A stretch of DNA of 64,000 bases. It comes from Bugula neritina (taxonomy: Eukaryota; Animalia; Bryozoa). The stretch's first letter is position 1, and each line of letters begins with the position of its first letter. Made by a program: the position numbers and the translations under genes. This document shows positions 8,156 to 49,454 of the stretch, one piece after another. The stretch spans positions 14,011,133 to 14,075,132 of the forward strand of contig OZ037771.1 of the NCBI GenBank assembly GCA_964035545.1, in the 5' to 3' direction. The notes beneath the pieces are model-generated. The model ran no database searches and was not told the DNA's origin. It saw only the letters and a program-made list of their open reading frames with translations.

Positions 8156-8876
8156 ATGTCGAATTCTCCGTATCCTAAGCAAACTAAGGGTCAAAGAAGC
8201 AAGACCACTGAGTCTCAGTGTTAATGTTATGCATACAATTGCCGCAACTACCAGTACAGCAGTTACATAAAGACAAAAAAATCTCTTTTCACAAGTAAGT
8301 ATATGGCTTTAGTTACAACAATCAGTGAAAGTAATACATGAACTAGCGTAACAGTAGGCTTAATAGTTGTGGTAGCGGTGCTGCTGCCTACTAGTAGTAC
8401 TAGTACTAGTAGTACTCTACTACTAGTACTACTACTACTACTAGTAGTACTAGTAGTAATACTAATACTAATAGCTAAGGCTAATGGCTAATGTTATACT
8501 TACAGTATCAGTATGATAGTACAACTACTACTACTACTGCTGCTACTACTACTACTAGCCTACTGCTACTACTACTACTACTACTAGTACTAGCCTACTG
8601 CTACTACTAGTACTACTACTACTAGCCTACTGTTACTACTACTACTAGCCTACTACTACTACTAGCCTACTGCTACTACTAGCCTACTGCTACTACTACT
8701 ACTAGCCTACTGCTACTACTAGCCTACTGCTACTACTACTACTAGCCTACTGCTACTACTACTACTACTACTAGCCTACTGCTACTACTAGTACTACTAC
8801 TACTAGCCTACTGTTACTACTACTACTAGCCTACTGCTACTACTAGCCTACTGCTACTACCACTACTAGCCTACTG

Positions 8877-8968
<92 letters not shown>

Positions 8969-10290: not shown

Positions 10291-12578
10291 GAAAATCATC
10301 ATTTCTCCCTTTTAAATTTACTCATTGAAGTATATTATGACTTATTTCAGCACCACATTGCTAAACTAACAAATATTGCTATGCACAAACTAAATTTTAG
10401 GCAATGTAGCAACAAAAGTGTACTGTTTAGAGGCCAGTAATAAGGATGTGGGTAATTAATCGTTTAGAAGTTATTACAACAGTATTTATATTATAACATT
10501 AGATGATAACAAATATTGTTATTGCAATATAATATTATTTTTTGTTTATTCTGTAATTCCATTTTAATCACTTATTGCTTTCAGATTAGCACTTGAAAAC
10601 AGAATTTAAAACTTTGAAAGGTTTAAGGAAATCTGTTACTTGCCTGTGTTGTAAAGCTGGGTCTTACCACCGGTTTTTTTATATTATTTATAAACTTTTA
10701 TACTTGTTATCCTTACTGCCAGTGTTCATGTACTAAGGCTGAAATTTGCTTTGCTGTTGCTTTTCATTTAATTTTGACTAATGTGTTGATCTAATCAATA
10801 AATATGTAATGCATTTGTTAGGTTATTAAAGTTATTATCATATATACTTGAGGTACATGCTTCATAAAATGATAATTAGTCATGAAATTACAAATACCAA
10901 AAGTAAAATAAACAAAATAATTGGTTCCTGCTTCACATTGCTGAATTTTCATTATTTTTTAGTATTTACCTCAATATATAAGCTCTAATAGCTTGCATTT
11001 ATAATGGATTTTACTACTACTGCGTGCAAAACAAGTAGGCGTGGTTAAGTTTTCCATGTTAAGGCGGAGCTAAACTATTTGGCCACGCTAAAACGTCCTT
11101 GGCCTCTCCAGGTCTATTCCAGCTCAGTGACTAATACCACCAAGCTAGTCATGATAGCCTGCTAGCTAGCAAGCCTGTGACTTATAGTAATGTAGACCCC
11201 TATATTATATTATGCTCATCTCTACGCGTTCACCGAAGTGTGAAGTGATGCACAGTGTTTACTGCTTAAAAAGAAATACACCATTTCCAGTGTATAAATC
11301 CACAATTTATATAAAATTTAAAAGTCATTGACTTTTTATTCAGATATCATGTTTTCCTGCTAAGATATTTTACTGGGACTACAAAAATCAACTTTGAAGC
11401 AAAATTAGCCAAAAATGTGCAGGTTTTTTCCTATAACTTTGCAAAGGAATGAAAAAATTCCAAAAAAGCTTCACTGAGAAAAAATACGATTCAGACCAAA
11501 GTTTTTAAATTTTGATTCTAGTAGCCTTCAATTAAATAAGATTGTTTTTATTGGTACTGAATTTTACACAGTTACAATGCAAACCTTAGCATGGCAGTTG
11601 CAGCTAAAAAGTTGCCCTTAGCTATCCTGTGCAGACAGATATTTTAAAGACATTTAATCAGGACAGGCCATATAGAGACAAGACTTTTTTAAAAGTATAG
11701 CTAAGATCTCATTTTTATTGATTGTATTGTGAAAGATAAGTAGTTGAAGAATCCCTGACACACTTCACTTATGCAGTACTAAAATATTATTGTGTATATG
11801 TTAGTTTTCATTTACATACTGTTTTAAGATTAGATGCCTAAACAATTTTTGTTTTATAATGAATTTTGTTCGAGTATGTACTGAAATGATATGGGGTTTG
11901 TGATCGCCTTGACCTTTGACCTTTGACTACTTGTTAGATGCTGCACTGAGATCGCTTGAAGGTTTGAACTTTGAACTTTTAATTTTCAGTCAAATGAAAT
12001 ACACAAAATAAATAATACACTTCACTCACTAGTCAGCACTTAGTCCAGCAACTAAGGGTTATATGTTCTGATACAAAACCAGATATTAACAGAATTGTTC
12101 AAGGCAAACAGTACTCACTATGTACTCACAAGTGTTTCACTGATGGTTGTAAACTATAACTATACTGGTAATAGTACAGACTCTTAGCACTGGCACATCT
12201 TGTTTAAATTTGCATGTGCAATCATGAATATATACCTTGTATGTATATATGTATAATTTTTTATGCGCAAACATAAATGCATATATATAATTATTGATTA
12301 TTAAAGTAATAAAAATGAAATGTTTCTTGTTTACCTATTTTAACTAAATGCATATATACACACATACACACACATAAATAATATATATTTATTTAAATAT
12401 GTTATGATTTTAATAAACATGCAAAGCCTAGCCCTCGCTTATAATTACACTACATATAGCCTGCAGATGTTTAATGAATCTTGAAAATTGATTTTAAAAA
12501 CAGAAAAAATGTTGTGGCCCCCAGCTCAAGCTGAAACTTGCAGACTGGCCCTTGGTCTGAAAAGGTTGGACACCTCTG

Positions 12579-13983
12579 TATTATAACATAGTAGATATAT
12601 CAAATAGTATATACACATGCACTTGATACGGAAACTATGTTGTATATTATGACTGAACATTGAAGATAATATTCAATAACTCATGCTATATGAAGTTAAT
12701 GTAACACAGGTTCTATAATCACATAGTATATACTGGTGCATTAGTACACATGTGGAGTATACAATGGGGTTAACATCAGCACATGCAGGTAAAATTGGGA
12801 TAGTGCGGTACAAATAGAAAATTAGGTAAATATGCATCAGTTTCAAAATCGGTGTTTGGGGTTGAAGGGTTTGTTTAGGGGCTTGAGGTTTAGGGTGTAG
12901 GGTTTAGGGTTTGAGGCTGAAAGCTTGGAGTTTAAGATTTGGGTTTTGGAGTTTGGGGGTTTGGATTGTGGGTTAAGGTAAGGGTCGGGCTTTGGAGTTG
13001 GGGTGGGGTTTTTGGTTTGAGGTTTGAGTTTGGGCAATTATGACATCAGCTAATTTGCCATTTTACATACATTTGTATTTGTGACAGTTTCCCATGCAGT
13101 CATTTACTGTTTCAGTGTTGCCTGTACTGCCATTCATTGTGTGCTACTTTTAGCTTTTCAAATTTATATAATAAGCATCACACATTAAAGTTTGCTGCAC
13201 AAAAGTCGACTAACACTATGTAGACTAAATCTAACGTAGTTTCTACAAAAGCTGCCTGATAAATATTGTCGAGGCAGACTAACTCTAAATCTTCAAGTGT
13301 TGAGAGAATAAGCAGATGTGTATCAGAGACTACGTCAGTCAGTTTTATCTAAACTCATAGTATAACTATATATATAGTAACTTTCCAGAGGGTATAATAG
13401 CTGTCATATTATACTGCTGACGTACAAGATAGACACCTGGACTTTCACAGCTAATTGTTTAAAATATTATCTTCTTCACTTCATCATCCATTTAATAAAT
13501 TGTAAATATAATATTAAGGTGGCTTTAACTATAATACATAGGACAGTTTATACAGGTACAAGGAGCACAAGTAATAAATTAATAGCACCAATGAAAAAGT
13601 AAGCAAAATGGAACACTAAAGTCTTGCCCAGATCCAAATCTTCAGCCTCCAATCCCATGTATCCAAACCCCTCACTCCTAGCCTACCAGTTTACCAAACT
13701 CCGAATGAGGGCCCAAACCCCAAACCCTTAAACCCCTAAACCCCAAATCTTATGATCTTCAAACCTCCAAACCCAAGCCCCAAACCCCACCTCTAAACCT
13801 TAACCCTCTACTAAAAACCCAAACCACTATACTCCTAACCCCATAACCCCAAATTCTATAGCTTTCAAACCTTCAAACCTAAAACTCTCAAACCCCTCCA
13901 TATAATATACTTCCAACTTCAACCCCAAATCACATTATTAAAAATTTTCTAATTATGCAATTAATTATAACCAGTGCAAATTT
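12579..13983. repeat. Repeat array, segment 2
   Basis: 12579 onward matches 3879 onward. Junction core at ~13275-13440; C-rich arm at 13640-13930. Confidence 0.92.
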
Positions 13984-15044
13984 CAGTGCATCACACGGCT
14001 TTTACGACTGTCAGGGTCGATCCTCATTTTGCCATTTCGCGATATTAGCCGCAATAAACAATATATTTTCGTGCGATAACATCGACTGTCTAGGGCGCTA
14101 CTGTTGACGAATCAGAACAAAGAGAGCACATGAGTGCTGTAAACATGTACGTGTTGTTATGGTTACTAATGATGATCTGCTACGTAATTTTTGTAGTAGA
14201 CAACTCTCACAGAAATCATTAATTTGTCTTTTCCTTATTTAGCTAACAACTTTTGCCTAGAAAAGAGAGAAGGCAAGGTGGCTCAAGCGATGCTGTATTT
14301 TTTTAGAATGTTTTAGCTTAAATTCTGTTTGGTTTATCCTACTAGAATGTTACCTGCTGCAGCATCAACACTATCATTGCAAAACTATATCTACTTATAA
14401 CAAAATCTTGATGCCCATAGCAAAATTATATACTTTATTGTGGCGGATGTGCAAGAGTTTGGAGTCATCTCATCAATTACACATAGCAACAGAAGAACAC
14501 AATATAGAAATAACAGAAAGCCAAAGACGGTATACCTTTATTTTTAACCAAGAAAGAATTTTGTTAAACATTATATTGTTAAGTTCACCATAAAAAAACT
14601 GATTTTACAAGTGGTTACATCTTTTCCGAAAATAAAGGTGCCATGAAGCAGCCGAAAATGAAGTCGTCCGCTCACCAGACACCTAAAAAATAATTATGCA
14701 ACATGATATTTTCAAAATTAAACACAGATATGCAACAGTCATCACCTACATAATTTTTTATAAATTTAACAAGCTTGTTTAGTGAAAGTGTATAATACAA
14801 ACACTAATGTTGATAGCGAAAATGCCATGTTCATGCAAGATAGTAAATCAATATAAATAAGAAGTCATATCATATCTATGTTATATATGTATTCAATTCT
14901 GGTTTATGCTTTATGCCTTCAACTATGAGTGCACAACCACTAATCCTATTTCTACCAACACCATCTCTACCGCTAACAGTACTAACGTCAGAACCAAAAA
15001 CAACTTCACCACTACTACTAATAATTCTATTATTTTATTATTAT

Positions 15045-15235
15045 TACTTCTACTACTATACTACTGCTACTGCTACTACTACTACTACTAGTGCTACTGC
15101 TACTGCTACTACTACTTCTACTACTGCTGCTGCTGCTACTACTTCTACTACTGCTACTACTGCTGCTACTACTACTACTGCTACTACTACTACTGCTACT
15201 ACTACTTTTACCACTACTAATATTGTTTCTACTAC
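15045..15235. repeat. (CTA/CTG)n microsatellite
   Basis: Directly visible; it produces the Thr/Ala- and Val-rich ORFs in the track. Confidence 0.95.
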
Positions 15236-17019
15236 AAATACTGTAAATCTTACCAGCAGCAAGTTATATTGGAAACTGTTTGCTCATATTTTTATCATTG
15301 TATTAGTGCAATAACAAAATGTTTATATTTTAATATAGTCAAACCTTTTAAAAAGCTACGCTGCTACTTATGAACTAAGAAGTTGTGCTACCCACCTTGA
15401 TATGCACTCGGCTCTAACACCAAGCAGGTGGTTATGATGCTTCTCCACAATAGCCAGGCTATCCAGCTGTCCGATTGTATGCATCTACGTAAAAATTATT
15501 GGCATATGGTGCAAGAAATGATTAAAAACCAGATAGGTGTGCTAGAATTTATACAGCATAATATAGAGTAAGGTAAAAGAGAACAGACCGTCAAGTGGTA
15601 CAGCATAGAAACAATTACTAGCTATTATATGCTTTATAGAAGTTGGCAAATTGTAGCCCACTAGATATGAACTTTAGTTAGCATTTTATTTTGGCTTTCA
15701 GCAACTGCTTTAATCACTGATCTTGGTAAAACCAATATGTTTACAAATTAACACCTCCACTAGATAGGTATACAGGTCAAAATATTCCAATTGGTGACAT
15801 ACTAAAAGAAAATGTATATTTATTCATTTTTAAAAGATTGCTAATAATTTATAGAACAGCGTCGAAATCACTAAAGTAACAGCGCAAATAAGTTTATTAA
15901 ACAGCATTATAGGATTGCCTATTACTAGTTTCATGATTTCTATTATTTTACTGGTTTCAAACATAATATAGGCTGAAAAAGCAATATTAGTTCTCTCACT
16001 TTTGCTAACTACATTGCTTGGAAGGCCATCATAATTAGATTAGATCAAACAAATGTGTTGACAGGTAGACTGGAACAGGCCTAAAATTTGCAAGGTATAA
16101 TTTAAATTTATCTGGCCTGAAATTGCTGAAACTGACAATACAATAATATGAGAAACGAGCAGGGTTTTTTATTAAAGCTAGCAAAAATAATTCCTCTACA
16201 TATAATTAACATACAGTCCATACATATAATATATTACTATGTCCAGGCAGCAGTGCTTGTTCTAGCCAAAAGAAAACTGATTTAATGGCTGATTTTAATG
16301 GCCAACAAGAAATTTATGGCGCACAGTGGCATTGTCATATTTTTAATATTCAAAATTACAGTTCTAATCTATCAATCATTTTATCAATACTACTATACTA
16401 TAATCTACTCCTGCTGCTGCTGCTGCTGGTTCTACCACTGCTACCATACTGTTGAGTAATGCAAGCTAAGTAATTTAAATTACAATTAAAAAAATTATCG
16501 GACTTTCTTTTCTATTACCTGTCTAGTTTAGCATTTCTTTCATCATAGCTTGCCATATTAACTTGAAAATTCACAGGGTTTGAGTTAGACCTATGGAATA
16601 TACTTACAAGTAGAATGAACCCACAGTTCTGCAATATATCATAAAAACATTCAAAATAAAACTATAGGAAAACCAAGTAAATGCTTCTAAGTATTAGCGC
16701 AAGTAAAGATGCTATGCAATCTATCCAACATGCAGCCAAATGTCTCAAAATAGGCTTCAGAGTTATAAATATAAAATGTTTCCAAATCAAGGCTAGCAAC
16801 ACTTCTGTTGTTGTGATAGCAAATTTTGCTTAATAAAGTAAGGAAACCAGCTTCCCTTGCATGACTCAATTTCTATTAAAGAAAAATTATACTCTCCTAT
16901 AATCGCTGAAACACAGGCCTGTCACAAGTACATGAATGGTAAATTTAGATGTTTTCCTAAAACCATCATCAAAACAGTAAACACACTGCAAAATATTTAT
17001 TTTTACTTTTTCTGCTCAA

Positions 17020-17600
17020 ACATTTAAATGGGCTCTGCAGGATATGACAAATACCAAAATAATTCGGCTTTGTGAACTAGCAAATATGGACAAACAAACA
17101 CCCTAATATTCACGCCAAAAGAAAAGTCTACGCAGTTGGTGTTCTCAGCATTCTTCCTTGTGAATCAAAAACATGGGCAACATGTGGACTGCAAGAATCA
17201 AAGCTCAGCACTTTTCATACCTGGAGTTTAAGATGCATGTTGAGTAAAATCTGGGAAGATAAAATGATAAATGAAGATGTATTTGAAATCACAGACCCGG
17301 ATTCTCTTTCTTCAAAACTGAATTTCTTCTGTCTTCACTGGGCTGGTCAACATGCCAAAGTATCTCATCCGCCGCACTCGATTGCATGCATTAATATCAA
17401 AAGGAACTCATCCAGCTAGAAGAACTTATATCTAAGGTTTGAGGATGTCCTGAAACAAGAGCTTAAGGAATTTTACATAAAATCCAATCAATTTACCACC
17501 TCTCAAATGGAGGCAAAGCATTCTTGCAGGATGGGCATTCAACACTGGAAACAATATAAAGGGAGCTATGGCTAGATGTTCAAGACATGAATGCTAAGGG
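17020..17600 (+). mobile_element. RTE-clade LINE, degenerate 3' fragment
   Basis: Translates AKRKVYAVGVLSILPCESKTW...FHTWSLRCMLSKIWEDKMINEDV...LHWAG...LRFEDVLKQELK, matching the RTE post-RT consensus (TKxKVY..LLYGSETW..LRRIL.I.W.D...N..V..LRWxGH). Confidence 0.85.
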
Positions 17601-17649
17601 TGTCATGTATATGATCACTGAGATATTTATGACAATCTCTCAATATACC

Positions 17650-20150
17650 TTAGCATATTAAATATGCTTGTAGTTATAGCTATTACTATAGTTGTTATAT
17701 ATGCTACTAACTAACAAGCAATAACCGTATTACAAACATAGGTGAATAAGAAAAATAATTCAACAGTGGTGATATCAGTATAGGTATTATAATTTAGCAA
17801 TTGGCATACAAATTAAAAATGATGAATATAATGATGGTTAAAGTTATTAGATACCTAAACTTATACCTATATTAATTAAAACAGTGACTTGTTGAAAAAT
17901 AAATAAATTAATATTCATTAAAACTTTATTAAATTAAAAGATAATGTTGAAGTAAAATGAACAGTTAAAATTAATTTATTCACAATAATTTTAACTTTTT
18001 ATGATCAACCTTAAAATAAAAACTCAAGTATTTGTAGCAAAGTTTTGAATAAAGTTGGATTTTGCAACGGTTTGAGATACTTTCACTAGCACTATGTGCA
18101 TAACTGTATAAGTTTTATCATATTAATACAGTTACATACTCATACTCAAATATATAGTAACATTTTCAATAAATCAGGTATTGGTATTGAGATTGCGTTG
18201 GTCGAGATAACATCATGGTTACTCACTTATGGTTGTATACTTTAGCTTATACTTTTAGTTACATGTACTACTGCCCTATTATTAAACTTAATCTTAGTCT
18301 GTCATCACTTAGAAAACATAGTTCAGTCTTGAGGCAAATCAGTTTGAGTGTCGTTAGTTTCATTACCACTAATCATTAGATTTAGTCAGTGTACTTAAAA
18401 TTTATTGATCAATATTACCATCAAATTTAAGTGACTATTATTATGAATACTATATCTATCAAATATCAAAAACTGCAAGCTTAATAAGTATGATTAAGAA
18501 AATCACAGCCAACATGGCGATGATTGAATTGTATGCTCGTGCTATTGAGATTCCTAACATAAAGGTTAACCTTACATAATGATTAGATAACAATCATATT
18601 CAATTTTTCATTACTGTCATTTGTTAGGAAAAGCATCCAGTCATAATTACTCCTATGCTCCAACCAAATAATTGCTTAGCCCCATTTAACAAAAAACCTT
18701 TCCCATCAGGGGTTTCTCACAGGGATGCCAACTATAAACTTGCACAAGTTTTATTTAATAGTAAATTAATTTACTTATATAAAAATTATTACATTCACAG
18801 TGATACATTGATGGTCATAATGTTTTATATATCAATATCATCATTATGATACAATTATCACTATTACTATATGATATCTTATCAATAAAATTTCATAAAG
18901 TTCATGAAAAACATTAAATATAACAATTTAATTAAAACTAAATCACTGCCAAAGGGCAAGGTAAAGTCAAAATTAAATAAGCTATAGGGTGTAGGCTATA
19001 AGTGTAAGTATAATTATCACTATAAAACTAAGTGACTGATGAGTTGGTACTTGGTAGAATAAACATAAAATGAACATAAACAATCATAAACTAAAACACC
19101 ATTACATATATGATTTATGACCCTTTGGTTTCTATTTTTAATTTTAGCTTTACCTTGTCTTTTGGCATTGGTTATAGTATTAGTTTAGGTTACACCACTA
19201 TCAGTTACTATGACTATGAGTATGAGTGAGTAGCCTTGCCCGTAGAACTAGGAGTAAGAGTAGATCACTAGAAGTAGAAGTATGGGTATCGGGGTGTGAC
19301 TATAAGTATAACTCATAGTCATAGTATGATTATCTTACTGAAAGTGATACTCATAAACCTCAAGTGATAATCATAATGATACTCAGCATGACATGTAAGG
19401 TGTATGATAGTCAGTCTCGGTTATACAGAGTAGAATATCAAACTTTAAGTTTAACTGCTACTTTGAAGTAGGACTTAGACATCACCATTTATGGGTATGT
19501 CATGCCGTCATAGACTATAGACATAGTATAAGGTTCTAATACTATAAGTATAACTATTACTACTATAAGTATAAGTCTTTAAGTTTAAGTATAACTATAT
19601 TTACTATTGATTAATTTCGATTTGATACTATTACTATTACTATTAGTAATACTGTATTAGTATTAGTATTACACTTTACAGTATTACTATTAGTATTAGT
19701 TGATCCCATACTGATAGTGATACTCATACCACTACCATTATGATTATGATTAAGAGTACTACAGTGAGTTATACTCACAGCTATACTGATTACTAATTTA
19801 AGATCACTCTAATCAGTAACTGTTATCACTAAGTATTAGTGGATTATTTATCATTTTATGATTTTATCATAGTCATAGTGAAACTGATTGAGTAATACTT
19901 ATAGTTATAGCTATATTCATATTGGTAGTGATACTGATAGTGATGCTGATAGACTTAGACTTAGAGTGTGAGTCAGAGTGAGAGCGATATTCATGTTTAT
20001 AAATATGATTATAACTAAGACTAAGAGTAAGAGCAAATGTAAAGTCTAATCGTGACATTATAACTATTACCATTAGTGCATTCGTATTACTATTAGTATT
20101 AGTATTACTAATTATTAATCTATTTTCCAATAATAACCATGCATATGCCC
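17650..20150. repeat. AT-rich low-complexity tract with 3/6-nt periodicity (AGTATG, ACTATA, TAGTAT)
   Basis: Visible degenerate hexamer periodicity, strongest at 19200-20130. Confidence 0.7.
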
Positions 20151-22008
20151 TAGCCTATAACTATAAGTTTGAGCACGCCTATGGTATTCAAAATTGAAAT
20201 TGAATCTTTGGGTCATTTGACCAAAGGAGCCGCGGACTCAATTAGGCATTGGACCTTGGGGGCGATTCTAGTGTTCAAGTAGAACCGATATTCGGTCAAA
20301 ACAGGTCTGGTCTATCATGGTGGCCAGTAATTTATCTGCGCAAATTTACTCGACTCTTGTGTTCATAATAAACTCGGCCTGACTACTCCGCAAATGGGGC
20401 GATAATCATAAATTTCATAATAATATATTATTAGAGACTAATTTAGTATGTATACACATGTCGGTAATTACAATCTAGTTCCATTCTTCAGGAAAACCCA
20501 TTACGGATCAGGTTGGTACTATTGCTATTAGGTTGAGAATATTATTAGTAAAACAATCACAATGTGCTCATTTTTGATATAAATTATTATTACTACTAGT
20601 ACAGTAGTAGTACTAGTAGTAGTAGTACTCTAGTTACTAGTACTAGTAGTAGTAGTACTAGTAGGCCCACTAGTAGTTATGGTGTCTAATACCTTGATTG
20701 AGAACTGTGAAAATCATTAGATTTAGTGATAACAGACTACCACTGTAAGTCTGTAAGTGCTTTAGTACTAGATGTACCACAAGTATCAATGCTTTAGGTT
20801 TTTATGGTGTTAAATACTCATTTTTTACAGTGATTGTTATTTTATTGGTACGTGTTCTGTTACTTGTGAGTATTGTTACAATTCCAAATGAATAAGCCAT
20901 TTTAAGTAAATACTCTTATACGGTGTGAATATTGATATGAATTATATGTTTCACATTTACCGCTATAGTTTTATCAGTATGATATACATTTTTTTAATAA
21001 TAATGATCATAAAACATCATCATTAAAAGTGTAAAGTTTTACTCCACTTTTTGGGACCAGTTGCTGCTTCTGGTAGCATAGGTAGAGTCTTTGCTCATTT
21101 ATCCTAACACACTAAGGTTTGAGTTTTATCTTTATTGCAACATCCAAAAACCTTTGCCGACCTTGTTCTTACAATCAACTATGAAACCTTGTGAGTCTAT
21201 GCCTAGTAGATGCATTACTGATAAATAACTAATAATATCTGCTTGTTATATGGGGAAGAATTTTTTGCATAGTAATTTTTCTCGTGTTTGTATTTTGATT
21301 TTTCTAATGTCAATATACTTAAGAAATATCCTGGAAAGCATTTTTTGCCAGTTCATTTCTTCTCTTTATTTCTTGTTCATTTTAACCATGCAATATCAGT
21401 TATTAACTCTCCAAGGTATACTGTTTTAATTATTCGTTGCTCTGGTGTAGCATCTAGGATGGTGTTGATATTAAGTGTGGTGCAGACTTTTTGAAAATCA
21501 TGGCTTTTGTTTTAAAACCTTTCTTATCCATATCACAAAGTTTTCTTGCTTGTTTACCGCAATGAGTCTTAATCTAAATAAAAAAGCAATATTTGATCAA
21601 TTAAATTTTCAATCTGAAATTGGTTTTCAAACTGCTTTTGCCATTTAGTGTTCTTTTGCTGATGCTATATTAATGTGATTTTAAAAGGGAGTTTGCTGCG
21701 TTATTAGATGTACTTATAATATGGGTATTTAAGTTCAATGGGAATATAAATATCCTTTTCATTATTGAAATGTTCACAATGACAACTCTGTTCATATGAG
21801 CTGCTGACTACAACTTAAAAGTTATCTGTTTGGAATGATTTTTATAGACTCTTGATAATGATTGCGTATGATTTACAATACAATACTATTTACCAACTAT
21901 TGTTCGATGGTCACATGTCTTGTTTTATTTTTTCATCTTTTTTGTTTTCAATATGAGCAAACAAATAAGAATTGTATGGGTACGTTAAATTATTATTTAA
22001 TTTTTCAG

Positions 22009-22874
22009 AATATTTCAGTTGGTGACCACTGTGGAGGAATTGAATGGAAAGCTGCAAAGACGGTTTCAGGCACTTATATGTAAGGCATTGGATATGGAGA
22101 GAGGGAGATCTGTGCTTATCCTTATATAATGCAAGTAAGTTAATTAATGTATTGCTGGCTTTTATTTATATGCATATAAAGTTTGTTTAGTGACTATTTG
22201 TGCTTGAAATTATTTGCAAAATTTAATTTGTCCTCTGCTTATAAAAATCTATTCAGAACTTTTTGCCTGTAGAATCTTCAACGTTTTAATTATATTTTTT
22301 TGGAGTTTTAGAAACAATTTCTTGGTACACAATCTGTTGCTACCAATGTAAGGTGACGGTACTTCTCTTGACTTCTAAAATGCAAGCAAAGCTTGTTTCC
22401 TCTCACGATTACTTTTTGAGTGTGATGTTCGCTAAGGCACACATTTGAACATGTCAGTTACTACACTTTAATAGATGTTTTAGTATTAGATATATTTTAG
22501 TTTTAGGTAACATGAAATATTGAAAATAATGTATGCGAATCTGGTGAATGTTTAGACTTCAACTACCCCTATGCAAATGCAGGTTTAAACCATATAATCA
22601 AACTAAAAATCAATTATTTTTCTTTATATTTGATTTCTAGTTTTTTAGGTGAGAACTTGTTTTGTTTTGTTAAAAATTGTGGTTGGAAAATATCCTTATT
22701 CACCAGGCCACAGCTGCAACATTTACACTGCATGTCATCGTGATTTATGATTGAAGGCTAAGTGCAGTGGTAGAGTGTGGCAAGGCATAGGTCTAAGTAC
22801 TGAAGAGACCACGGAGCAGAAAAATATTTATATCTCAAGATGTGGCTTGATTACACAGCATATGAATTATGATG
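22009..22874 (+). pseudogene. KDZ (Kyakuja-Dileera-Zisupton) transposase catalytic-core exons, degenerate
   Basis: 22009-22134 HCGGIEWKAAK..S / ICKALDMERG(fs)EICAYPYIMQ; 22312-22457 FLSVMFAKAHI*TCQ; ~22758-22874 SGRVWQGIGLSTEETTEQKN..ISRCGLITQHM. These match the Zisupton motifs CG.s.WkAA, ALnM.RGEi.AYP, FLSVMHAKAH.W.C and GR...GaG...GE..EQ.NS.lSR....TK.M. Weaker exon candidates at ~21770, 23602, 24470 and 25838. Confidence 0.88.
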
Positions 22875-25048
22875 GTAACAAAATATATGCCTTTCAACTT
22901 TAAAGTTTTTTTAAGCTTGCATTAATCTTATTCAAGATAGTATCTGTCCAAGCATTTAACAGCACATTGTAGGCCTATAAGGTTTTGCAAATGTTATTTA
23001 ACTTTGTTTACTACTTGTTTTTTGCTATTTTCAACAACTCGAACATGCCGCCAGTTTTTGTAATTTTCAAACAAGAAATTTCACAAACTCCATCAAATTG
23101 ATTCAAATAGATGTTATATGCACTATGCAGTTACAAAAGAATATTTTATTAACTAATTATGAGTCATAGTGTGTTGTAAAAATCTAAAACTTAACTATGT
23201 ATTATTATGTCTCGTAAGACTATTTTTCAAAAAATTCCAAAGGGTTTTATTTATATATAACTCAAAGCCTGAAAGTTTTTTTTTGTCCAAAGTTCTTATT
23301 GTGACAATTAAAAGTCGCATCATAGTTTTTATTCTGTTGAATTACTTCATCACCCTTCGAAATTATTTCTTTCACTATGATTATTATAGTTGCTACCTAT
23401 GATTACCTAATTCAACATATATTCTTATTGTTATCAATTTTTTTTCATAACTGTCTTAATTCCATTTTCAAAAACGTATTTAAAAATGATATTAGCAAGT
23501 TGAATAGTTAGTTAAATGTGGCTTCAGATGCCATACTGCATACATTGTCACTTTTTACATAGGCAATCATTGTATTTCCTAAATTAATTATTTCTTTTTA
23601 GTTTAAAATGAACTACTCGATGGCTGTTGTGGTGAAGCTGAAAAATGCTGACATAGAAGATGTAATGGAAAGACTTTGTTTTGCTTGTCCAGGTAAATCA
23701 TTTGTACAAAATTAAAAGTCTATTATGATAACAGATGATCTAAAAATAAATTGCATATCTTAAGGCTTAGTGGTAATATAATATACTTTGAGCACAAATT
23801 TAAATGATTAAAAAGCCCTGCATTGCTTACCTAGTATATTATCTCTTTACACATATTAGAAAAAGAAGTCATCATAATTTTTTTACTACAGAACATAGTC
23901 AAATTATTACATTTACTTTTACATGAATAATCAGTTTCTCAGTTTTTTTCTTTATCTTCATGAACAAGCATTAACTTTGAAGACCTAAAAATAATGCACA
24001 CAATTTTGAGGTATTTTTCTTCTTAAGTGTTTAAAATGTTTGACAGTTGGAAGAATATTTGGACATGATGTCAGTATGTTTCCTAGTTTTTCATATGGTT
24101 GAACTTGATTTTTGTCATTCTCCTATACTCCTCAAGTGTGGAGTCCTGAATGTACACTTTTACTACGCTATTGTTCAGGGTTGTTTTAATTTTACTCTGT
24201 TACTTTACTATATTTTAATCAACAAACCCCTAATTTATATTGATGGTATTTATGGTTATATTTTAGTCAAGCTGACCTAACACTTGTTCAGTTCAGGCTC
24301 ATCAATGTATGTTTGGTTTAGAAAATTAAACTGCAATGTGAAGTATTCAGACTAGTTACTTAACTAAAAAATGCACTAAATGCAAGGAAATATTATGTTA
24401 ATATTTGTTACCATAGTTCATTTCAAACTCATACATGTGATCAACAAAATACTTCATTTTGTTTTGCAGTGTAATCAAGATGAAATTATGAATGATGAAA
24501 TTATGGATGGCAGCCAATTTATTTTGACTATCAGACAAGGACTACAGTTTTTATGGTAATTTCAATTTTTGAATATATCTCTTATATTATACATAAAATG
24601 TTCACCTTCTGCTTTAATTTGCAGCCAGGTTTTACTCATGGCTGCTGTATTCAAGTCACCTCATCACACAGCCAATCTACAAGACTGTCATAAAAGTTGC
24701 TATTATATTTTTTCACCAATTAATTAAAAGAAATAGAACTTCGGCTTCACAAGTGGTGTCACTCTCATACTCATTGTTTTACTTAATTTTGCCATCCTCC
24801 TATTCTTCACTATATTCTTTTAGGTCGCAGTGTTCTGCACTAATCTATGATCTCTTTTGATTTTTAACCCCCATGTTTAAATGTTTTGGTCTTGCTCCCT
24901 TTTTCTGGAGTTTCACACTGATGTAGCTGATTCCCTTCTTGTTTTATTGTTCTCTGCTGCATAGGTGCCCATATTATTCCAGCCTTCTCTTTCCCACAAA
25001 TATAGTTACTGCATTTACTGCCGCCCTGTCTCAGATCCCTTCATTTCT

Positions 25049-25552
25049 GGGAACGAAGCAATATTCCGAAGGCCCATTGCTCCGAAGGTCCATTAGTCCG
25101 AAAATTAGTACACACAGGCATCCTCACTGAGAATATCATTAATATCACTCACAATTCAGTTTAAGTTCTTGCTATATTATTGATCTGTGGGTGGCATGCG
25201 TGTTGCCTATTTGTGATTGTTTAGCCTGAGATTACACTATGATCAATAAGGGCTGTATCGTTTATCAACATTCCATTATGGCTGCTCCATAAACAAAGTA
25301 CACACCAAGCTATTCATTAGCCTGTCACCTCGCAAGCCTGTAATTAATAATGTACCGTACGCATAATCATGTTGATAGATGATGTAGCAAGTAGGCAACA
25401 CACATGCCACCCACAGAGCAATAACATAGCTAGAACTTAAACTGAATTGTGAGTGAAATTAATGATATTCTCATTGAGGATGCCTGTGTGTACTAATTTT
25501 CGGACTAATGGACCTTCGGAGCAGTGGGCATTCAGAATATTGACTAGTTACC
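25049..25552. mobile_element. Foldback/MULE-like MITE
   Basis: Inverted arms of ~175 bp with repeated TCCGAAGG.CCATT subterminal motifs. Degenerate 9-bp TSD TTCATTTCT/CTCATTGCT. The paralogous site in copy 2 (~52365-52380, minus strand) is empty and reads CTCATTCCT once. Confidence 0.85.
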
Positions 25553-26538
25553 CTCATTGCTTATGTAGCACAACTCATCTCCATGAAACCTAATTGATCC
25601 TCTAGGTACTAAGAACTAGGGGCTGTCTGCAGTCATAATTTATTGCCAAAAGACATTGTCAGTCAAATGCACATTTTATATCAGCATTTTCAATTTTGTT
25701 GGCGTCTTCTTGATGGAGCCTTACCCTATTTCTTTTTCTACCCCTGTTTTGCATACTCTGTTGCTATGTGTCACTTCAATGAAACCATCGCCTCAACTTA
25801 TTTAGTTTGACTGTTGAAATATATTTTGCTTTTACAGGTCTAAAAGAAAGTGGCCATTTGAGTTTAAGTGCAGCTTCACTATTGACAAGAACATCTACGT
25901 TAGAGAAGAAAAGCATCTAGCTATATAATCAAGATGATTTGCATCCTGATTGTTACGATACCGCATGGTTCTGTTGTCATACTATTGTTCTTTCATACCT
26001 TTGTACTTTTTATTGTAAAGAGCTAGGCTTGAGCTCTGTAATAGGCAAGCCTACAATATATATTGACTGACAACAAATATGTCATCTCTCTCCCACATAA
26101 TCGCAAGGAGTTACATTCTAGTATTGGTTCTAAAAACTCACACCTTAGTAATTAGATGCATAGCACAAAGTCTTAGCAATAGGGAGTATTGGTAAATTTT
26201 CCACATGAGTGGTGAGAAAATAACACTAACTTGAGACCTTTCTAAAACTCAACATTGCATTGCAAATAAGCTATACTTATTGTGCTTTATTCAGTGCTAG
26301 CTGGTATTTTTCAGACTGTTGGCCACAGCAAAGTATTTTGCCTTTTTTTGTACACATAGCCTAATGGTTGATTTAAGAAAATTGGAAGCTGCAGCCTACA
26401 TGCACTGCAATTCATCATTCTCATTCCGAAATGGATTTCTCATCACCTCATGGAACTAATTACATAACGAAGGAAACCACAACTGATGAGTTACTGCAAC
26501 TACAAATTCACAAAATGCTCAGTCATAGAAGCGAAGTA

Positions 26539-26699
26539 CACTGCGTTTCCATTATCGCATTATGCGAATGGATTTTTTCATTCGGCTAATGGGAACAGTT
26601 ACATCCGATGAAACGCAACTATAAGTTAATGCAAACCACAAACCGCAAATAATCCGTACAGAATTCATTCGCATTATGCGAAGTCATGGAAACGCAGTG
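26539..26699. mobile_element. Small MITE, PIF/Harbinger-like termini
   Basis: Perfect 14-bp TIR CACTGCGTTTCCAT...ATGGAAACGCAGTG with internal TCGCATTATGCGAA palindromes. Absent at the paralogous site (~51275-51300). Confidence 0.8.
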
Positions 26700-28700
26700 A
26701 TAAAGAAGTCAATGTCAGCCCTGGTGAATATTTACCTAAAAGGCAACAAACAAATTTTACTGCACCATTTCAACAAGTTAAGATATAAAACGCCTATTCT
26801 TTTAATTTGATTGTTCAGCTTGATTTTATTTTTAGATTGTACCAGCTGGTGCAATAAAAATATATTTGGAAAGGCTTCAGTTTTATAGAGGAAAAGCAGT
26901 GAAATAACTTTCGTTTTACCATGCACCCCTAATCAACGCTCTTGTAGTTTAAGAGCTTAGGTTAATAAAGTTTCTCAGCTAATTAATCCCACCTGCACAC
27001 ATTTTTACACATAATTATCAGTCGTCTCAGCACCATGCAATAGTTAGATTAAAAGGGTCATTTATTGACAATTAAAAGCCATAGTTAGCAGAGTAGTTAA
27101 AAGCCTTTTTTCAATAATAAGTTTTTGGTTGCATTTTTCAAGTTATTCTTTCATTGTAAATTAAGATAAAAACAAAAACTGCAGGGCTTACCTACAGCCA
27201 AGTAGAGAAATTATATTCAATATGCTGTCAAAGGCAAACAAACTATATGAACTATTATAATATGATATTAACTATGCACATGTGCTATGCTTCTATTTAT
27301 TTTTGAATTGTGGCTCAGATATGCTAAATACTCGAACTGCGGTTACTTCTTTTTCTGTTCAGCTGTATAAGTCAATAGGTAGTATTTTAGGATTGAAGTT
27401 TTTTCTTAAATAGAATTTCTATAGGGTAGTCTTTAGTATAAATTCTTTGTCTGCTAAAATCTATGAGCAAAATAATATTTATAGTACTCTGTTTTGAAAG
27501 AATAGCACACCATTTGGTACAGGAATTTGGCCCCTATAAAAATGCAAGTGTTGGTGATGGAAGTAGTAAACGAATTGCTACTGCAAGTGTAGAGTAGTGT
27601 GACTTTCAGCCATGACAGAACGTACTTCAGAGCATAATGACATAGCATAACGTCAATAGTTGTGCATTACACGGTTTAGTTGCCTGCTGGCCCGTTTGTA
27701 ACACATTCTGTTAGTGCAAATAAGTGGTAATCCAGTAGGCCTAATGGAACTGCATTCGTGAACTATTTATAGTTAACATATTATGTCAACCACAATATCA
27801 TTACCCTTTGACCATCTTTGTTTTCCATATGCCTATTGTGAACTGCATAATGTTAGCCAACATGTTTTGTAAGCTTATCAGTTTAGCTATAGCTATATAA
27901 ATGCTTGTAAGCTTGCTCGCACCTGGCAATACCATGGTAGGCCAACTGCTAGGACCATGACTAGTGCAGCCACAATTAATATAACCAACCAGCTTTCACT
28001 GTAGTGTGGCCATATGTTTGGCTTTGGTAATATTTTGTCAGAGTGCAAGTCTCAACTGATGCCATAAATTGCAATGTGAAAACTATCATGAATCAAGTAA
28101 TATGTTGGTAAAGATATGCAAAAATGTATAACAAGTCACAAAGTTATCTCAAAACAATCAGGGTTTCAAATTTCATCACTGATGGCCATAGCTCAAGCAA
28201 GTTGAATATCATTGCAACAAAAAGGAAGCAACTTATTTTCTCCAAAAAATTTGTTATTGTAAAAATAAGTAAAACTAATTTAATTTTTAAAATTTACCTC
28301 TAATATTAGTTTAGATCTTTTCATGATTTGCGGACGTAAACCTAAAATTAAGGCTGCATGCATGTTTTCTCAAACCAAAGTGTGTTTACCTATAAAAGAT
28401 AATTTGACTTGTCAATCTATTACCTAGGTCCTAGTACATCAGTGTATATTTATATACCATAGCTCTGACCGCTGGCTGTGCCTTAGTAATAATATACAAA
28501 CTACAGTTTATTTTTAACCGTTGGTTTATTTAATCAAGATACCTTTGCAAGTAGCAACAGAGTCATAGGCCAATTTTAAAACAAGATGGCAATCCACTGC
28601 TAGTAAACACCCTGATGGAATATAACCCACTCATTTTTCTAGCTGTTGTTTATATCATTATAGTATAATCCCTTATGTATTGGCATTCTTCCTAAGATGA

Positions 28701-28772
28701 TGCATTGGCTTCGTGGTAAACCGCGTTTCCTTTGCACTCGTTGGGTATGGGTTCAATCCTCGCAGTCAGCTA
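28701..28772 (+). pseudogene. tRNA-like / tRNA-SINE head remnant
   Basis: A-box-like TGGCTTCGTGGTAA and B-box GGTTCAATCC at tRNA-like spacing, followed by a T-run. No convincing cloverleaf. Confidence 0.55.
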
Positions 28773-30964
28773 AATTTTTTGCAATCTTGCATTCTTGTCA
28801 AATACTTCCACTAAATTATTTTTACTAATTTTACACATTGATATGTGTAATAATAGTGATGGGTCAAATATGACTATAGTTGTAGAATTTCTTTCACTTT
28901 TTAAATAACACTCAACAGGTGGACAGTGTATATAGTACATACATATTAGTTAGATACTGAACACTGGGCTAAATATAGGGTTTAGTTATTAAGTAAATAT
29001 TGATAGTTGGTGCAATAATGGAGAAATTAAGTTATGTACATGTTCTTGTGATTACATTTTTATTAACCGCACCCCACGCTAAAATTTGTTATCCAGATGA
29101 AGAAGGTTAAGCTATCAAAGCTTTTAAATTACTGCACAGAAGTGTAAAAATAGCAGCCTATTTCTTCTTGTTATATAGTGAAATGACATTCATTATGTAT
29201 ATAGGCATATATATATATATTTTAATTCTGTTACATCATATTTTAGCTTTAAAACAAGCATGTTATGTCCATTTGTTTATCACACCCCTGCAGTAAATAT
29301 GTCAAAAATTCCTTACTTTTGCTACCTAAAATTTCTTTTAAAATATAAGCAGCTACATAGAGCATTTTTTCAAGTTAGAAAATATGTATATATATTTTTC
29401 AACTACGTTTTAAAAGGAATACAAATATGTAAACCACAAAGCAGTGATTGTCTTCTTTCAATGCCATATTTTTGATGACACCAAGAAAGAAGGTGATAAT
29501 GCAACTCCTAAGAGCATGTGCACTAAATCGCTCCTCTGTCTGAGAGTATACCATTTGTATTAATGTATGAAGTCTTCAACATATATTTCAACTTATTTTT
29601 GCAAGTAACTCATGACAGTAAACTATATGCTTGCTTTTCTTCATGTGTGTGTGCGTGTGTGAGTGTGTGTGTAAAAATGCAGCACTCATAATAGTTGCTA
29701 TTTTATGAACAGCTTACTATAGCTACAGTTATATGTAATTGCATAGGAGTGTTGCAAGTGTTTGCTAAAAGATGGTATATAAAACATGTCGACGAATTTG
29801 TTGTAGAAAAATTTAAATAATTACTTAGCATTTAGCAATAAAATTGTTCATGTACAAATCAGAAACACCAAGTTGTATGCATATATTTCAAATAGTATAT
29901 GCATGAATTTGCAAAAAAAATTAGAACTTATACTTTCACTATGAGTATATGTTTTATATATGTGCTCATTTTGTATATACTGCACAATATGTTATTTACA
30001 ATGTTAAACCAAAATAATCAGAACTCAATATAGTGTAATACAGGCACATCTACAATGTTAACAAATATAACATTAAAAACAAGAAACAAAATTGTTGGTA
30101 TCTTTTACTTAATTTTTTACAAGCAAAAAATTATTCTTGCCGCAAACTAAATTTAAATGCTGAGGTTCGTAAAGTTATATGTTTGTTAAATTATTTTGCA
30201 TTTGTTTATATTCTACAAATAATTTCTACATCTTTTATATAATTGCGATATTTCTTTTCGTCTACTACATGCAGCTCATTATATGCATATGTAGGCTATA
30301 TACAATGCAGCATAAAATTTTATAATACTAAGCAAAAAATGCTATGAAAATAAAAACATTTTACAAAATGATATTATATTATGGTAGCAATAAAGTTGTA
30401 ATAGACTATTATTTAATGAGAAGACAATTATGTCTTTATAATGAAGATTGATAAATTTATAATATGAGCTGAAATTGAGTGAGAAGACAATTATGCTTTC
30501 AAAATACTTACAAGACTAAATTCTTATCTAATAGCTACAGTATTTAATATCCTTTGTTCAGAACAAAGTCTAAAAGGAGCGGATTTAAATAAAAATTCAG
30601 ACCTGCATTTGTTAAAACTTTTCAATCAAAATTATTACATTATATTATTCTTTCTCATAACTCCTAGCTTCTAAAACCTTTTGCATGAAAAAATTGATTT
30701 AGAATGCAAATTACTGCTAGAAATTGCCGTGTTTTAATGTCAACCCTAACTGTATCCACCACTTGTTTTAGTTGTTACGATCGTTGCCTAACCAATGAAG
30801 TTGAACTGGTTGTACCTCCAGCCAATCAATTACTTATTTCAATTGCGCCTCATTAGGCTAGGATCGTTGACGAAATCTATATAATGTAATACAAATCCCA
30901 TTACCACTGATTGACCCGAAGTTCTCTACGACTTTTATAGTGGTATAGGATAATAGATATACTG

Positions 30965-33900
30965 GCAAATTTACCCTTACTTATATTTGTATTGTGTAAT
31001 TATACCCAGTGCAGCTATAGTTTTACTTGTGTCATTTTTTTCCCAACATCATATAAAGCTTCTCACCTCTTGTAATAGCAAGTTGAACTAATAATCTAGC
31101 TGGTGCCATGACCAAATGATGTAATATATAAATTATATGGTGATAGGAGCAACAATGTAGTATAATATGAGAATTGTCTCCCTTGCAAATGTAGTCGCTT
31201 TATATGCTGGTAATGAGTGTAAAATACTTATACTCATGCTATATGGAGTTGATGCAACATGGATTGTATAATCACATAGTATTCTAATATCTTTGCAATC
31301 ATGGTACATGCGAAGTAGAGGATGGGGTCAAAGTTTAAAAAACCTGAATAAATGGTCTCGGGTAAGAATGGCACAGGCGCAAGTTAGCACAGGCAAAAAT
31401 AGCAAAGAAAAAGTGGTGCAGATAATAATGGCAGCAGTGATATAATGGCACAAATGGAAAAGGATGGGAAATTGTGAAAAAAATTTAATATTAGGGTTTG
31501 AGGTTTTGGATGGGATTAGTTGGGACTGGAGATTAGGGGTTTGAGGTTGGAGTTAGAAGTTGCATGGAGGCTTAACTTTGCATGTAGGGGTTTGGGTTTT
31601 TGGGTAAATATAAAATCAGTGTGCCATTTTACAAGCTTTTCTATTTGTGTCATAGTGTTTTCCCATGCTGTTATTTACTGTTTCACTGCTGCCTGCTACA
31701 TTTATTGTGTGCCACTTTTATCTATATAATTATATGCATACAATAAGTATCACAAATTAAAAGTTGCTGCAGGAAAATTGACAAACACCTGCATGCAGTT
31801 AAAGTCTAAAGTAGTTTCTATAAAAGCTGCCTGATAAATATTGTCGAGGCAGACTAACGCCAAGTCTTCAAGTGTTGAGAGAATAAACAGATGTGTATCA
31901 GAGACTACGTCAGTCAGTTTTATCTAAACTCATAGTATAACTATATATAGTAACTTTCCAGAGCTGGGTATAATAGCTGTTATAATATACTGCTGATGTA
32001 CAAGATAGACACTTGGGCTTTCACAGCTGCTTGTTTAAAATACTATCTTCTTTGCTTCACCATCCATTTAATTATATATTGTAAATGTAATAATTATTAA
32101 GGTGCCTTAAGCAATAATGCCTACTATAGTTGGCACAGGTACAAATAAAACAATTAGTAAAAATAGCACAAATTAAAAAAAATAAATTAAAAGGAATACT
32201 GATGTTAATTTTGCTCAAACCCAAACCACTATTCTGCTAACCCCTAAACCCAAAAACCTATATATAGTTTTCAAAACTCAAACTCTTCTCTATACTCCCA
32301 GCTTCAACCTCAAATCACACTATAATAAAATGTGCTATTCATTTAGTTTCCAATTGTGCAAATTTACCCGTATTATTTCTATTGTGCCAATTAACCAGTG
32401 CAGCTATAGTTTTACCTATGTCATTTTTTATTCAACATCATACATATATAACCTCCCACATCATATTATGAGAGCAAGTTGAAGAAATAATATATATGTT
32501 AGCATGATGTAATAGATAAATGAGATGGTGAAAAGAGCAACAATGTGGTATAATATTAGAATTGTCTCCCTTGCAAATGTAGTCACTTTATATGCTGGTA
32601 ATGAGTGTAAAATACTTATGGATCACTAAGTGTATATGAGAATATAGTTTAAGGTAGAAATGTTTAACATTTACAAATATGTTACAAAATATTATCACAT
32701 AATAGATAATAATGGTAAAACAAATATCAATAAAATAATATACACACACTTAATAGTGAAGCTATATACTGTAGGTTGTATATCATGACTGAACACTGAA
32801 GATAATATTCAATAACTCATGCTATATATGGAGTTGTAACATGGGTTGTATAATCACATAGTATTCTATAATCAAGTAGTACACATTTGGAGTATACAAT
32901 GGGGTTAAAGTTTGCATGGTATAAATGGCAGAGTGAATTTTGTGCAGATAATTGCATAGTACAAAAGGAAAATTATACAAATGCGCCACATTATTAAACT
33001 TGTGGTTTGGGGTTGAAGGGGTGGGTTTGGGTTTTGTGGTTTGGCAGGGTTGGGTTGTGGGTAGTTAGGTGTAGGGCAATTTGGAGTTGGGGTTTTTGGT
33101 TTGGGGTTTGAGTTTTGGCAATTATGACATCAGCTATAAATTTGCCATTTTACATACATTTGTATTTGTGACAGTTTCCCATGCAGTCATTTACTGTTTC
33201 AGTGTTGCCTGTGCCATTCATTGTGTGCCACTTTTAGCTATGATCAAATTTATATAATAAGCATCACACATTAAAGTTTGCTGCACAAGAGTCGACCAAC
33301 ACTATGTAGGCTAAATCTAAAGTAGTTTCTATAAAAGCTGCCTGATAAATATTGTCGAGGCAGACTAACTCTAAGTCTTCAAGTGTTGAGAGAATAAACA
33401 GATGTGTATCAGAGACTACGTCAGTCAGTTTTATCTAAACTCATAGTATAACTATATATATAGTAACTTTCCAGAGGGTGTAGTAGCTGTTATAATATGC
33501 TGCTGACGTACAAGATAGACACCTGGACTTTCACAACTGGTTGTTCAAAAAATATTATTTTCTTTACCTCACCATCCATTTAATGAATTGTTAATCAAAT
33601 AATATTAAGGTGCCTTAAGCAATAATGCATACTATAGTTGGTACAGGTACAAATAAAACAATTAGTAAAAATAGCACAAATTAAAAAAATAAATGAAAAG
33701 GAATACTGATGTTAATTGTGCTCAAACCCAAACCACTATATATACTGCTAACCCCTAAACCCAAAAACCTATAGCTTTCAAAACTCCAAACCCTCAAACC
33801 CCTCCCTATACTCGCAGCTTCAATCTCAAATCACACTATAATAAAATGTGGTATTCATTTAGTTTCCAATTGTGCACTTAATTATTACTGGTGCAAATTT

Positions 33901-35560
33901 ACTTGTATTATTTCTATTGTGCCAATTAACCAGTGCAGCTATAGTTATAGCTATGTCATTTTTTACTAAACATCATATATAACCTCCCACATCATATTAT
34001 GAGAGCAAGTTGAAGAAATATCATATATGTTAGCATGATGTAATATATAAATTATACGGTGATAAGAGCAACAATGTGGTATAATATTAGAATTGTCTCC
34101 CTTACAAATGTAGTCACTTCAAGTGCTGGTAATGAGTGTAAATACTTATGAATCACTAAGTGTATATGAGAAGATAGTTTAAAGTAGAAATGCCTAAGAT
34201 TTGCACGACTGTTACGAAAACATTATCACATTGTAGATAGATCAAATAGTATAAAGTATATCAAATAGTTATAGAAACACACTTATATAATAGACGTGAA
34301 ACTATGTTGTATATCATGACTGAACACTGAAGATAATATTCAATAATTCATCCTATATGGAGTTGTAATATGGGTTGCATAATCACATAGTATACAAATA
34401 TCATTGCAATTATAAGTGCACATGTGGAGGATGCAATTGGGTTAAAGTTAGCACGCAGGTAAAATTGGCAAAGTGAATTTGGTGCTTAAGTAATTATGGT
34501 GCTAATGAAAAATTAATTAAATGTGCCACAGTTACATATTTGGGGTTTGTGGTTTGGGGTTTGGTGTTTGGAGGAGGTTTGGGGTTTGGGGTATAAGTTA
34601 GGGGTAGGGCTTTGGAGTTGGAGTCCGGTTTTCTGCTTGGGGTTTGAGTTTGGGCAAATATAGCAACCTACTTTTCTATTTGTGCCACTTTTATCTATAA
34701 TCGAAAAAATATAATAAGCATCAAACATTAGAATTTGCTGCAAGAAAATTGACACACACCGCATGTAAATAAAATTTAGAGTAGTTTCTAAAAGCTGCCT
34801 GATAAATATTGTCGAGGCAGACTAACTTCAAGTCTTCAAGTGTTGGGAGAATAAGCAGATGTGCATCAGAGACTACGTCAGTCAGTTTTATCTAAACTCA
34901 TAATATAACTATATATAGTAACTTTCCAGAGGGTTTAATAGCTGTCATAATATGCTGTCGACGTACAAGGTAGACACATGGACTTTCACAGCTGCAGTTG
35001 TTTAAAATATTATCTTCTTTATTTCAAGCAGTATGTTACTATAAATTACACCAATCAAATTAATCGAACAATAAACAATATCAAGATGCTATGGCTATAA
35101 TACATAGTATATTTTGCACAAGTAGAAACAACACAGGTAATAATATCACAAATGAAAAAGCAAGTAAAATGGCACACTGATAATAATCTTGCTCAAACCC
35201 AAACTCCTACCTCTAGCCAGCCAATACCAAGCCTCAAAATCCATAACACTTCTCCTGTAACGCTAAAATTCCAATTTCTCAAACTTACAATCCTCCAAAC
35301 CCTTTACCCTACCCTGTACCCCCCCCCTCCAAGATGTGCATGGCTAGCTATAATACAGAGTATATAAGTCAGCACTGATGCAAGTAGCAGAGGTAATAAT
35401 GACACAAATGAAAAAGTAAGTAACATGATACACTGGTAATAATTTGGTTCAAACTCAAACCCAAGCTCTTATAGCCTCTAACCCTCAGCACCAAACCCCC
35501 TACTTTTAGCCAATCAAACCAAAACCACTATTAGCTTGACTAACATCACATCCTGTAACC
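30965..35560. repeat. Repeat array, segment 3
   Basis: Continues the unit broken at 13983. Junction cores at ~31851, 33362 and 34819. Confidence 0.92.
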
Positions 35561-44589: not shown

Positions 44590-44746
44590 TAGTATTACTT
44601 TAGTGTTATTCATATTCATATTGTAATTGTTATTACTGCTGCTACTAGTACTAGTACTAATACAGTATTACTGTATTAGTACTAGTACTAGTAGCAGCAG
44701 TAATAACAATTACAATATGAATATGAATAACACTAAAGTAATACTA
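44590..44746. repeat. Perfect palindrome, 78-bp arms with 1-nt spacer
   Basis: Centre ...TAATACAGTA-T-TACTGTATTA... at 44668; the arms read as exact reverse complements. Confidence 0.9.

Positions 44747-49371: not shown

Positions 49372-49373
<2 letters not shown>

Positions 49374-49450: not shown

Positions 49451-49454
<4 letters not shown>

Follow-up and report, generated by a model that had tools for sequence, protein, structure and literature searches.

A non-autonomous, mosaic member of a young family of giant KDZ transposons in the bryozoan Bugula neritina

DNA transposons of the Zisupton superfamily were first described in fish and are also present in fungi, algae, nematodes, and other metazoans. 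They generate 8-bp target site duplications (TSDs) and carry terminal inverted repeats (TIRs) (PMC12730594), and their multi-exon genes, which encode the Pfam KDZ domain PF18758, have been reported from several metazoan phyla (PMC9297572). Kyakuja elements of Agaricomycete fungi have 5'-CA...TG-3' termini, no TIRs, and 7-bp TSDs (PMC12730594). The KDZ1, KDZ2, and KDZ3 elements of Cryptococcus neoformans are 9-11 kb long, with inverted repeats of 139-241 bp and a CxC1 domain; laboratory transposition events were observed for them, in most cases with 8-bp TSDs, and none of the movements seen involved a shortened non-autonomous derivative (bioRxiv 10.1101/2025.05.19.654958). Here we describe a 17-kb element in a 64,000-bp stretch of the Bugula neritina genome (assembly GCA_964035545.1, 216 Mb; contig OZ037771.1, hereafter C7, positions 14,011,133 to 14,075,132 of the forward strand), which we call the window and whose coordinates are used below unless a contig is named. 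With a probability of roughly 0.88, the element at 13984-30964 belongs, as a non-autonomous member, to a young family of KDZ transposons of giant size (17-32 kb); it is a mosaic that would be mobilized in trans, most likely by family members of 26-32 kb.

The element is 16,981 bp long (C7:14025116-14042096), begins with CAGT at 13984, and ends with ACTG at 30964; its transposase remnant sets its orientation as the + strand. It is flanked by an exact 8-bp TSD, GCAAATTT, with one copy at 13976-13983 and the other at 30965-30972. The surrounding DNA is AT-rich (~31% G+C in the window) and belongs to a macrosatellite with a unit of ~1.5 kb, which forms both the left flank (12579-13975) and the right flank (30973-35200) of the insertion. 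This satellite occupies much of the window at 1222-7646, 12579-13983, 30965-35200, and 40900-43047, and a genome-wide search with the flanks found it mainly restricted to 13.7-14.2 Mb of C7. For an empty-site test, the 400 bp to the left and the 400 bp to the right of the element were searched separately in the genome. Their matches meet with an overlap of exactly 8 bp in five paralogous units of the same chromosome that have no interruption, for example C7:14013683-14014086 with 14014079-14014483, and 14152768-14153165 with 14153158-14153561. Within the window, the units at 2111-3870 and 5978-7646 read through the insertion point without interruption. The 8-bp overlap in intact units means that GCAAATTT is single there and was doubled by the insertion. 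An initial sequence-only reading of this locus had proposed the exact duplication, the CAGT...ACTG ends, and a clean interruption of a repeat unit, all of which are present as described.

The ends recur throughout the genome, the first 400 bp of the element 35 times and the last 400 bp 40 times. Paired ends on the same strand were found at spacings of 17.0 kb (nine copies, including two on contig C112 at 17.03 kb), 18.1-18.6 kb (eight copies), ~20 kb (at least two), 26.1 kb (three), 28.6 kb (one), and 32.5 kb (one). Another group of at least nine copies has a right end (400 bp) that is just 81% alike. Both junctions were read for 30 end pairs, of which 25 have exact 8-bp TSDs (24 identified by script and one more by eye), every one distinct from the others. 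These duplications have a genome-like G+C content of 30%, with a weak tendency towards a purine in the first position and a pyrimidine in the last, and homology between family copies ends precisely at CAGT and ACTG. The sequence-only reading depended on such ends being paired with different 8-bp duplications elsewhere in the genome, which is what the 25 distinct TSDs represent.

The age of the copies was evaluated from five samples of the element totaling 3,673 bp: the left 400 bp, the right 400 bp, 1,051 bp of the KDZ remnant, 1,201 bp around a nested miniature inverted-repeat transposable element (MITE), and 621 bp of a retrotransposon tail. The window copy and five others (two each on C8 and C9 and one on C2) form a near-identical set of six: in these samples, each of the five is either identical to the window copy or one base different from it. 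For the 18-kb subfamily, identity to the window copy is 97-100% at the ends and 97-99% in the internal samples. Near-identity of the six copies, combined with the 25 distinct TSDs, supports the earlier proposal that the element moved recently as a unit.

Two sets of copies showed unusual junctions. The two 17.03-kb copies on C112 (L021 and L022, C112:601154-618179 and 635623-652649) are mirror-oriented and share a 20-bp outer flank; they look like an inverted duplication or an assembly palindrome, not two insertions. In one 26.1-kb copy (L063/L065, C7:12121255-12147360), the 8-mers at the two junctions differ, unlike those of the other three long copies checked, possibly as a result of recombination between copies or of a deletion in the flank.

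The transposase gene of the window element was mapped by alignment with the homologous exons of a 26-kb family member, and all of its remnants lie on the + strand. The first remnant, at 22015-22140, has lost ~16 codons through the CRH motif, including its C and R, and contains one stop and two frameshifts; its counterpart in the 26-kb copy reaches 30.5 bits against Pfam KDZ. The second, at 22312-22490, has three stops, one frameshift, and an Asp-to-Asn change in the conserved Asp-x-x-Cys motif. The third, at 22751-22900, covers the region of the Gly-Glu-x-x-Glu motif and is open, and a further exon remnant lies at 23623-23706. Counterparts of the CxC3 exon and of the first catalytic exon, which carries the DGN motif, are absent from the 17-kb element. 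Amino-acid identity to the 26-kb exons is 38-60%, with order and strand conserved, and a tblastx comparison of the element with the gene of the 26-kb copy gave nine matches in colinear order (summed E, 9e-40). KDZ core exons with stops, frameshifts, and a deletion in the CRH motif had been recognized from the letters alone, and the alignment bears this out. With the CxC3 and first catalytic exons missing and the rest broken, the 17-kb element cannot move itself by means of its own gene. Since its ends match those of a long partner and its own transposase is broken, it is best read as a non-autonomous derivative, in agreement with the previous description of a non-autonomous KDZ-type DNA transposon, which holds at the KDZ level through the exon homology and the 8-bp TSDs.

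The window contains a second, old and degraded member of the same family, here called the fossil copy, on the - strand; it extends from 43048 to 60272 or beyond. The terminal 13 bp of its right end, which lies at 43048, are unchanged, and this end adjoins the macrosatellite that ends at 43047, with a candidate flanking 8-mer at 43040-43047; its left end was not found within the window. The fossil copy is 87.5% identical to the 17-kb element in the KDZ-remnant part and 64-82% in other segments of the core. Three more old copies of this type are located elsewhere in the genome, at 81-82% identity. The fossil copy has the same ~16-codon deletion and the same stop as the 17-kb element, and it also lacks the N-terminal exons. 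Damage shared with a copy that is 13% diverged in the remnant places the death of this KDZ gene before the two lineages split, long before the present burst, so the earlier view of a transposase long dead by the time the element moved is sustained.

A comparison of the window element, the 26-kb lineage, and the fossil copy revealed discordant relationships along the element. The left arm (13984-21569, + strand) shares 93-96% identity with the 26-kb lineage over most of its segments and 88% over two short stretches; these 7.6 kb are common to all subfamilies, and no recognizable protein domain was found in them. The core (21570-29370, + strand) derives from the older, dead KDZ lineage, and the right arm (29371-30964, + strand) again resembles the 26-kb lineage, at 93% identity. 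When the left-arm segment adjoining the breakpoint was aligned three ways, the 17-kb element was 95.8% identical to the 26-kb copy and 72.5% to the fossil, with 72.5% between the latter two. For the core, represented by the KDZ-remnant segment at 22082-22649, the corresponding values were 68.6%, 87.5%, and 69.4%, and for the right arm they were 93.7%, 55.7%, and 55.4%. In the 17-kb element, a core of old, dead ancestry is thus set between two arms of the active lineage. This pattern identifies it as a mosaic, which may have been assembled by recombination or template switching, as considered below.

Pfam KDZ matches in the genome form two groups: a family with a 451-aa frame, and five matches (L006-L010) that fall within the 26-32 kb copies. 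For the 26-kb copy on C8, the exons were searched against Pfam singly, without joining. Three successive exons match KDZ (PF18758) with 30.5, 22.7, and 21.1 bits, at profile positions 55-106, 119-165, and 165-205. An upstream exon matches CxC3 (PF18804) with 24.6 bits (E 2e-5), slightly below the cut-off of 26.6 bits, and a 66%-identical relative on metagenome contigs (P0002) has a precomputed CxC3 match. The C8 copy retains the DGN, Asp-x-x-Cys, and Gly-Glu-x-x-Glu motifs, which we take, from KDZ alignments, to be likely markers of the acidic triad. In all three long copies that were compared, the CxC3 and KDZ exons, read exon by exon, are open; these copies are mostly 98-99% identical to one another and 96% over one repeat-rich stretch. 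Relative to the window element, the three 26-kb copies compared have an identical first 64 bp and one mismatch in the last 64 bp, and three of the four long copies checked have their own exact 8-bp TSD. Non-autonomous copies (at least 26) outnumber these long relatives (five).

The transposase region of the 26-kb copy could also be compared with a sequence from a metagenome of the Joint Genome Institute (JGI; L076, sample 3300002729), to which it is 94.7% identical over 8 kb. The exon cores of the two contain no stops and differ by 21.5 synonymous and 8.5 non-synonymous differences, giving a ratio of non-synonymous to synonymous divergence (pN/pS) of 0.10 (binomial P 9e-10). Non-synonymous divergence, at 1.1%, is lower than the overall divergence of 3.1% in the aligned region, which is mostly intron. 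The low pN/pS and the stop-free cores indicate that the transposase gene of the 26-kb lineage is under purifying selection and has been maintained in a functional state. The earlier expectation of a KDZ transposase elsewhere in the genome is therefore matched by candidates, namely the five 26-32 kb copies, with their selected open exons and termini that match in the three compared. A search of 1.84 billion proteins with the CxC3 exon returned metagenome fragments only, each a single exon of 82-181 aa. Separately, a more distant lineage was observed in metagenome sources that include JGI sample 3300003318 (L074 and L075); it is represented by N-terminal exons only and has ~70% amino-acid identity in the CxC3 exon.

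The two ends of the element are dissimilar. Their inverted repeat is limited to CAGT/ACTG (4 bp; 7 of the first 9 bases), yet each end is strongly conserved across the family. Among the 30 copies whose left end could be read, 20 have the same left terminal 64 bp (13984-14047, + strand), the three 26-kb copies compared among them, and nearly all copies are 97-100% alike over their first 400 bp. The right terminal 64 bp (30901-30964, + strand) occur in three variants, with two variable positions, among 30 copies of all subfamilies, and they are near-invariant even in subfamilies whose last 400 bp are merely 81% alike. The enzyme may need longer, asymmetric end sequences. The description of the ends as very short in the sequence-only reading is accurate for the inverted repeat of 4 bp; it does not extend to the sequence that the enzyme would require, given the conservation of the 64-bp and 400-bp ends.

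Compared with the described systems, the family resembles Zisupton in its 8-bp TSDs, its multi-exon KDZ transposase gene, and its signs of recent bursts. It differs from the TIR-bearing Zisupton elements in that its ends are inverted over 4 bp only and are otherwise dissimilar, and its members reach 17-32 kb. The CA...TG termini without TIRs and the KDZ-type transposase are shared with Kyakuja, but the TSD here is 8 bp and not 7 bp, the Cys cluster gives a CxC3 match slightly below the cut-off, and the host is an animal. Like KDZ1-3 of Cryptococcus, these are large KDZ elements with 8-bp TSDs; unlike them, the young copies are chiefly non-autonomous derivatives of 17-18 kb with almost no inverted repeat. 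By the PF18758 domain, the family belongs to KDZ through the exons of the 26-kb copies, with above-cut-off matches in the genome scan, and the window itself holds a broken remnant only. Judged on these sequence features, we regard it as a new family of a known class and not as a new kind of element, placed at the level of the KDZ superfamily, which comprises the Zisupton, Kyakuja, and Dileera branches.

Several observations weigh against the reading of a trans-mobilized KDZ element. The allelic empty site is absent from the assembly, where the best other match is a 94% paralogue, and an exact duplication is missing in five of the 30 end pairs overall and in one of the four long copies checked. 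The stop-free pieces of the window alone obtain no Pfam KDZ match, which makes the KDZ assignment transitive, through the 26-kb copy. Local alignment and k-mer analysis of the 400-bp ends found no inverted repeat longer than 4 bp and no shared subterminal words above chance. Finally, the genome contains the second, unrelated KDZ family already mentioned, whose single 451-aa open frame occurs in several identical copies, is intact in at least four, and scores 38.8 bits on Pfam KDZ (loci L001-L005, at C4:11721561, C4:11728328, C5:10985459, C5:8715204, and C8:6196648). That family, or an unrecognized transposase, could be what mobilizes the element in place of the 26-kb relatives; its Pfam score exceeds those of the 26-kb exons, and the helper role of the 26-kb gene is itself deduced from sequence. 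We nevertheless consider a different enzyme unlikely. None of the five loci of the 451-aa family is inside a copy of the 17-32 kb family, whereas the 26-kb copies do carry the termini and have a gene under purifying selection. A tblastn search of the 451-aa frame against the window found no protein similarity.

Continued autonomy of the 17-kb element, through an unrecognized gene in the shared arms or an alternative splice form of the remnant, would draw on the fact that the left arm present in all subfamilies has no assigned role and that six-frame scans easily miss intron-rich genes. We judge it very unlikely: the longest open reading frame with an ATG, GTG, or TTG start is 133 aa, the longest stop-free stretch is 155 aa and of low complexity, Pfam searches of 20 stop-free window frames found neither KDZ nor any other meaningful domain, and the remnant lacks two N-terminal exons and has stops within conserved motifs. 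Spread by segmental duplication, or an origin of the copies as assembly artifacts, is the most improbable account of all. The two mirror-image C112 copies with their common 20-bp flank do fit it, but in 25 copies the flanks are unrelated and each copy has an exact 8-bp TSD of its own, with homology that stops at CAGT and ACTG. Distinct TSDs and flanks contradict segmental duplication for the family as a whole.

Under the preferred reading of a non-autonomous KDZ element mobilized in trans, a KDZ transposase supplied from elsewhere would recognize the two dissimilar ends of the 17-kb element and cut at CAGT...ACTG, and the whole unit would then enter a satellite unit through an 8-bp staggered cut, by an inferred cut-and-paste chemistry. 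The likeliest source of this enzyme would be the five 26-32 kb copies, given the matching termini in the three compared. The mosaic could have formed when an old, dead element gained arms of the active lineage by recombination or by template switching during gap repair, and arms recognized by the current enzyme would explain the renewed mobility of a dead element. More specifically, a dead transposon may have been remobilized by replacement of both arms, with an enzyme able to carry 17-32 kb and to act on two dissimilar ends that are not inverted and are some tens of bases long or longer. We advance this stronger version tentatively, as a conjecture that we do not yet favor.

The element also carries passengers. 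A nested MITE of ~0.5 kb at 25049-25592 has inverted arms of 165 nt (25049-25213 and 25388-25552) and a degenerate direct repeat of ~10 bp on both sides; it is found in all 17 young copies and is missing from all four old ones. This MITE belongs to an abundant family with larger members that have paired arms of ~300 bp. Such paired inverted arms, 2-7 kb apart and 84-85% identical to the MITE, were observed at C9:6057616-6060011, C2:17560241-17562623, C6:1092357-1099502, and other loci, which probably represent the parent transposon family. A segment at 16911-18747 (+ strand) that is not in the 26-kb copies holds the tail of a 5'-truncated retrotransposon without long terminal repeats (non-LTR) at ~17076-17600, with an open frame at 17081-17416. 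This tail is repeated in the genome, with at least 14 dispersed relatives at 65-74%, and its segment is present in all 26 non-autonomous copies and in none of the five long ones. The open frame has the look of a non-LTR reverse-transcriptase C-terminus, as judged from its translation; it obtained no Pfam match, and an ESM Atlas look-up gave weak leads only, including DUF6451. Among the passengers named by the sequence-only reading, the MITE is present, the retrotransposon is confirmed as a genome-repeated non-LTR tail whose assignment to the RTE clade is putative, and the tRNA-like sequence was not found in the window by ARAGORN or Rfam.

Other repeats lie in and near the left arm. A TAC/TGC-rich microsatellite with a 9-bp period is located at 15008-15243 (+ strand), and a 650-bp TAC/TGC-rich minisatellite at 8381-9034, outside the element, is 80-85% similar to it. 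A 1.4-kb stretch at 11153-12578, adjoining the satellite, matches positions 22907-24318 of the C8 26-kb copy at 91% identity; it is probably a further repeat carried by the long copies.

The family indicates that, in an animal genome, KDZ transposition can handle units of 17-32 kb, and that non-autonomous derivatives of such a size can outnumber their helpers. Its mosaic member offers a concrete route by which dead elements regain mobility, and the near-invariant, non-inverted termini hint at where the recognition sites of the enzyme may lie. A transposase tolerant of cargo of this size might be of interest as a gene-delivery tool. If the replacement of arms and the use of unlike ends are true, the family would be a natural instance of 'arm capture', and it would show very large cargo being transposed in an animal by a DDE-type mechanism without TIRs.

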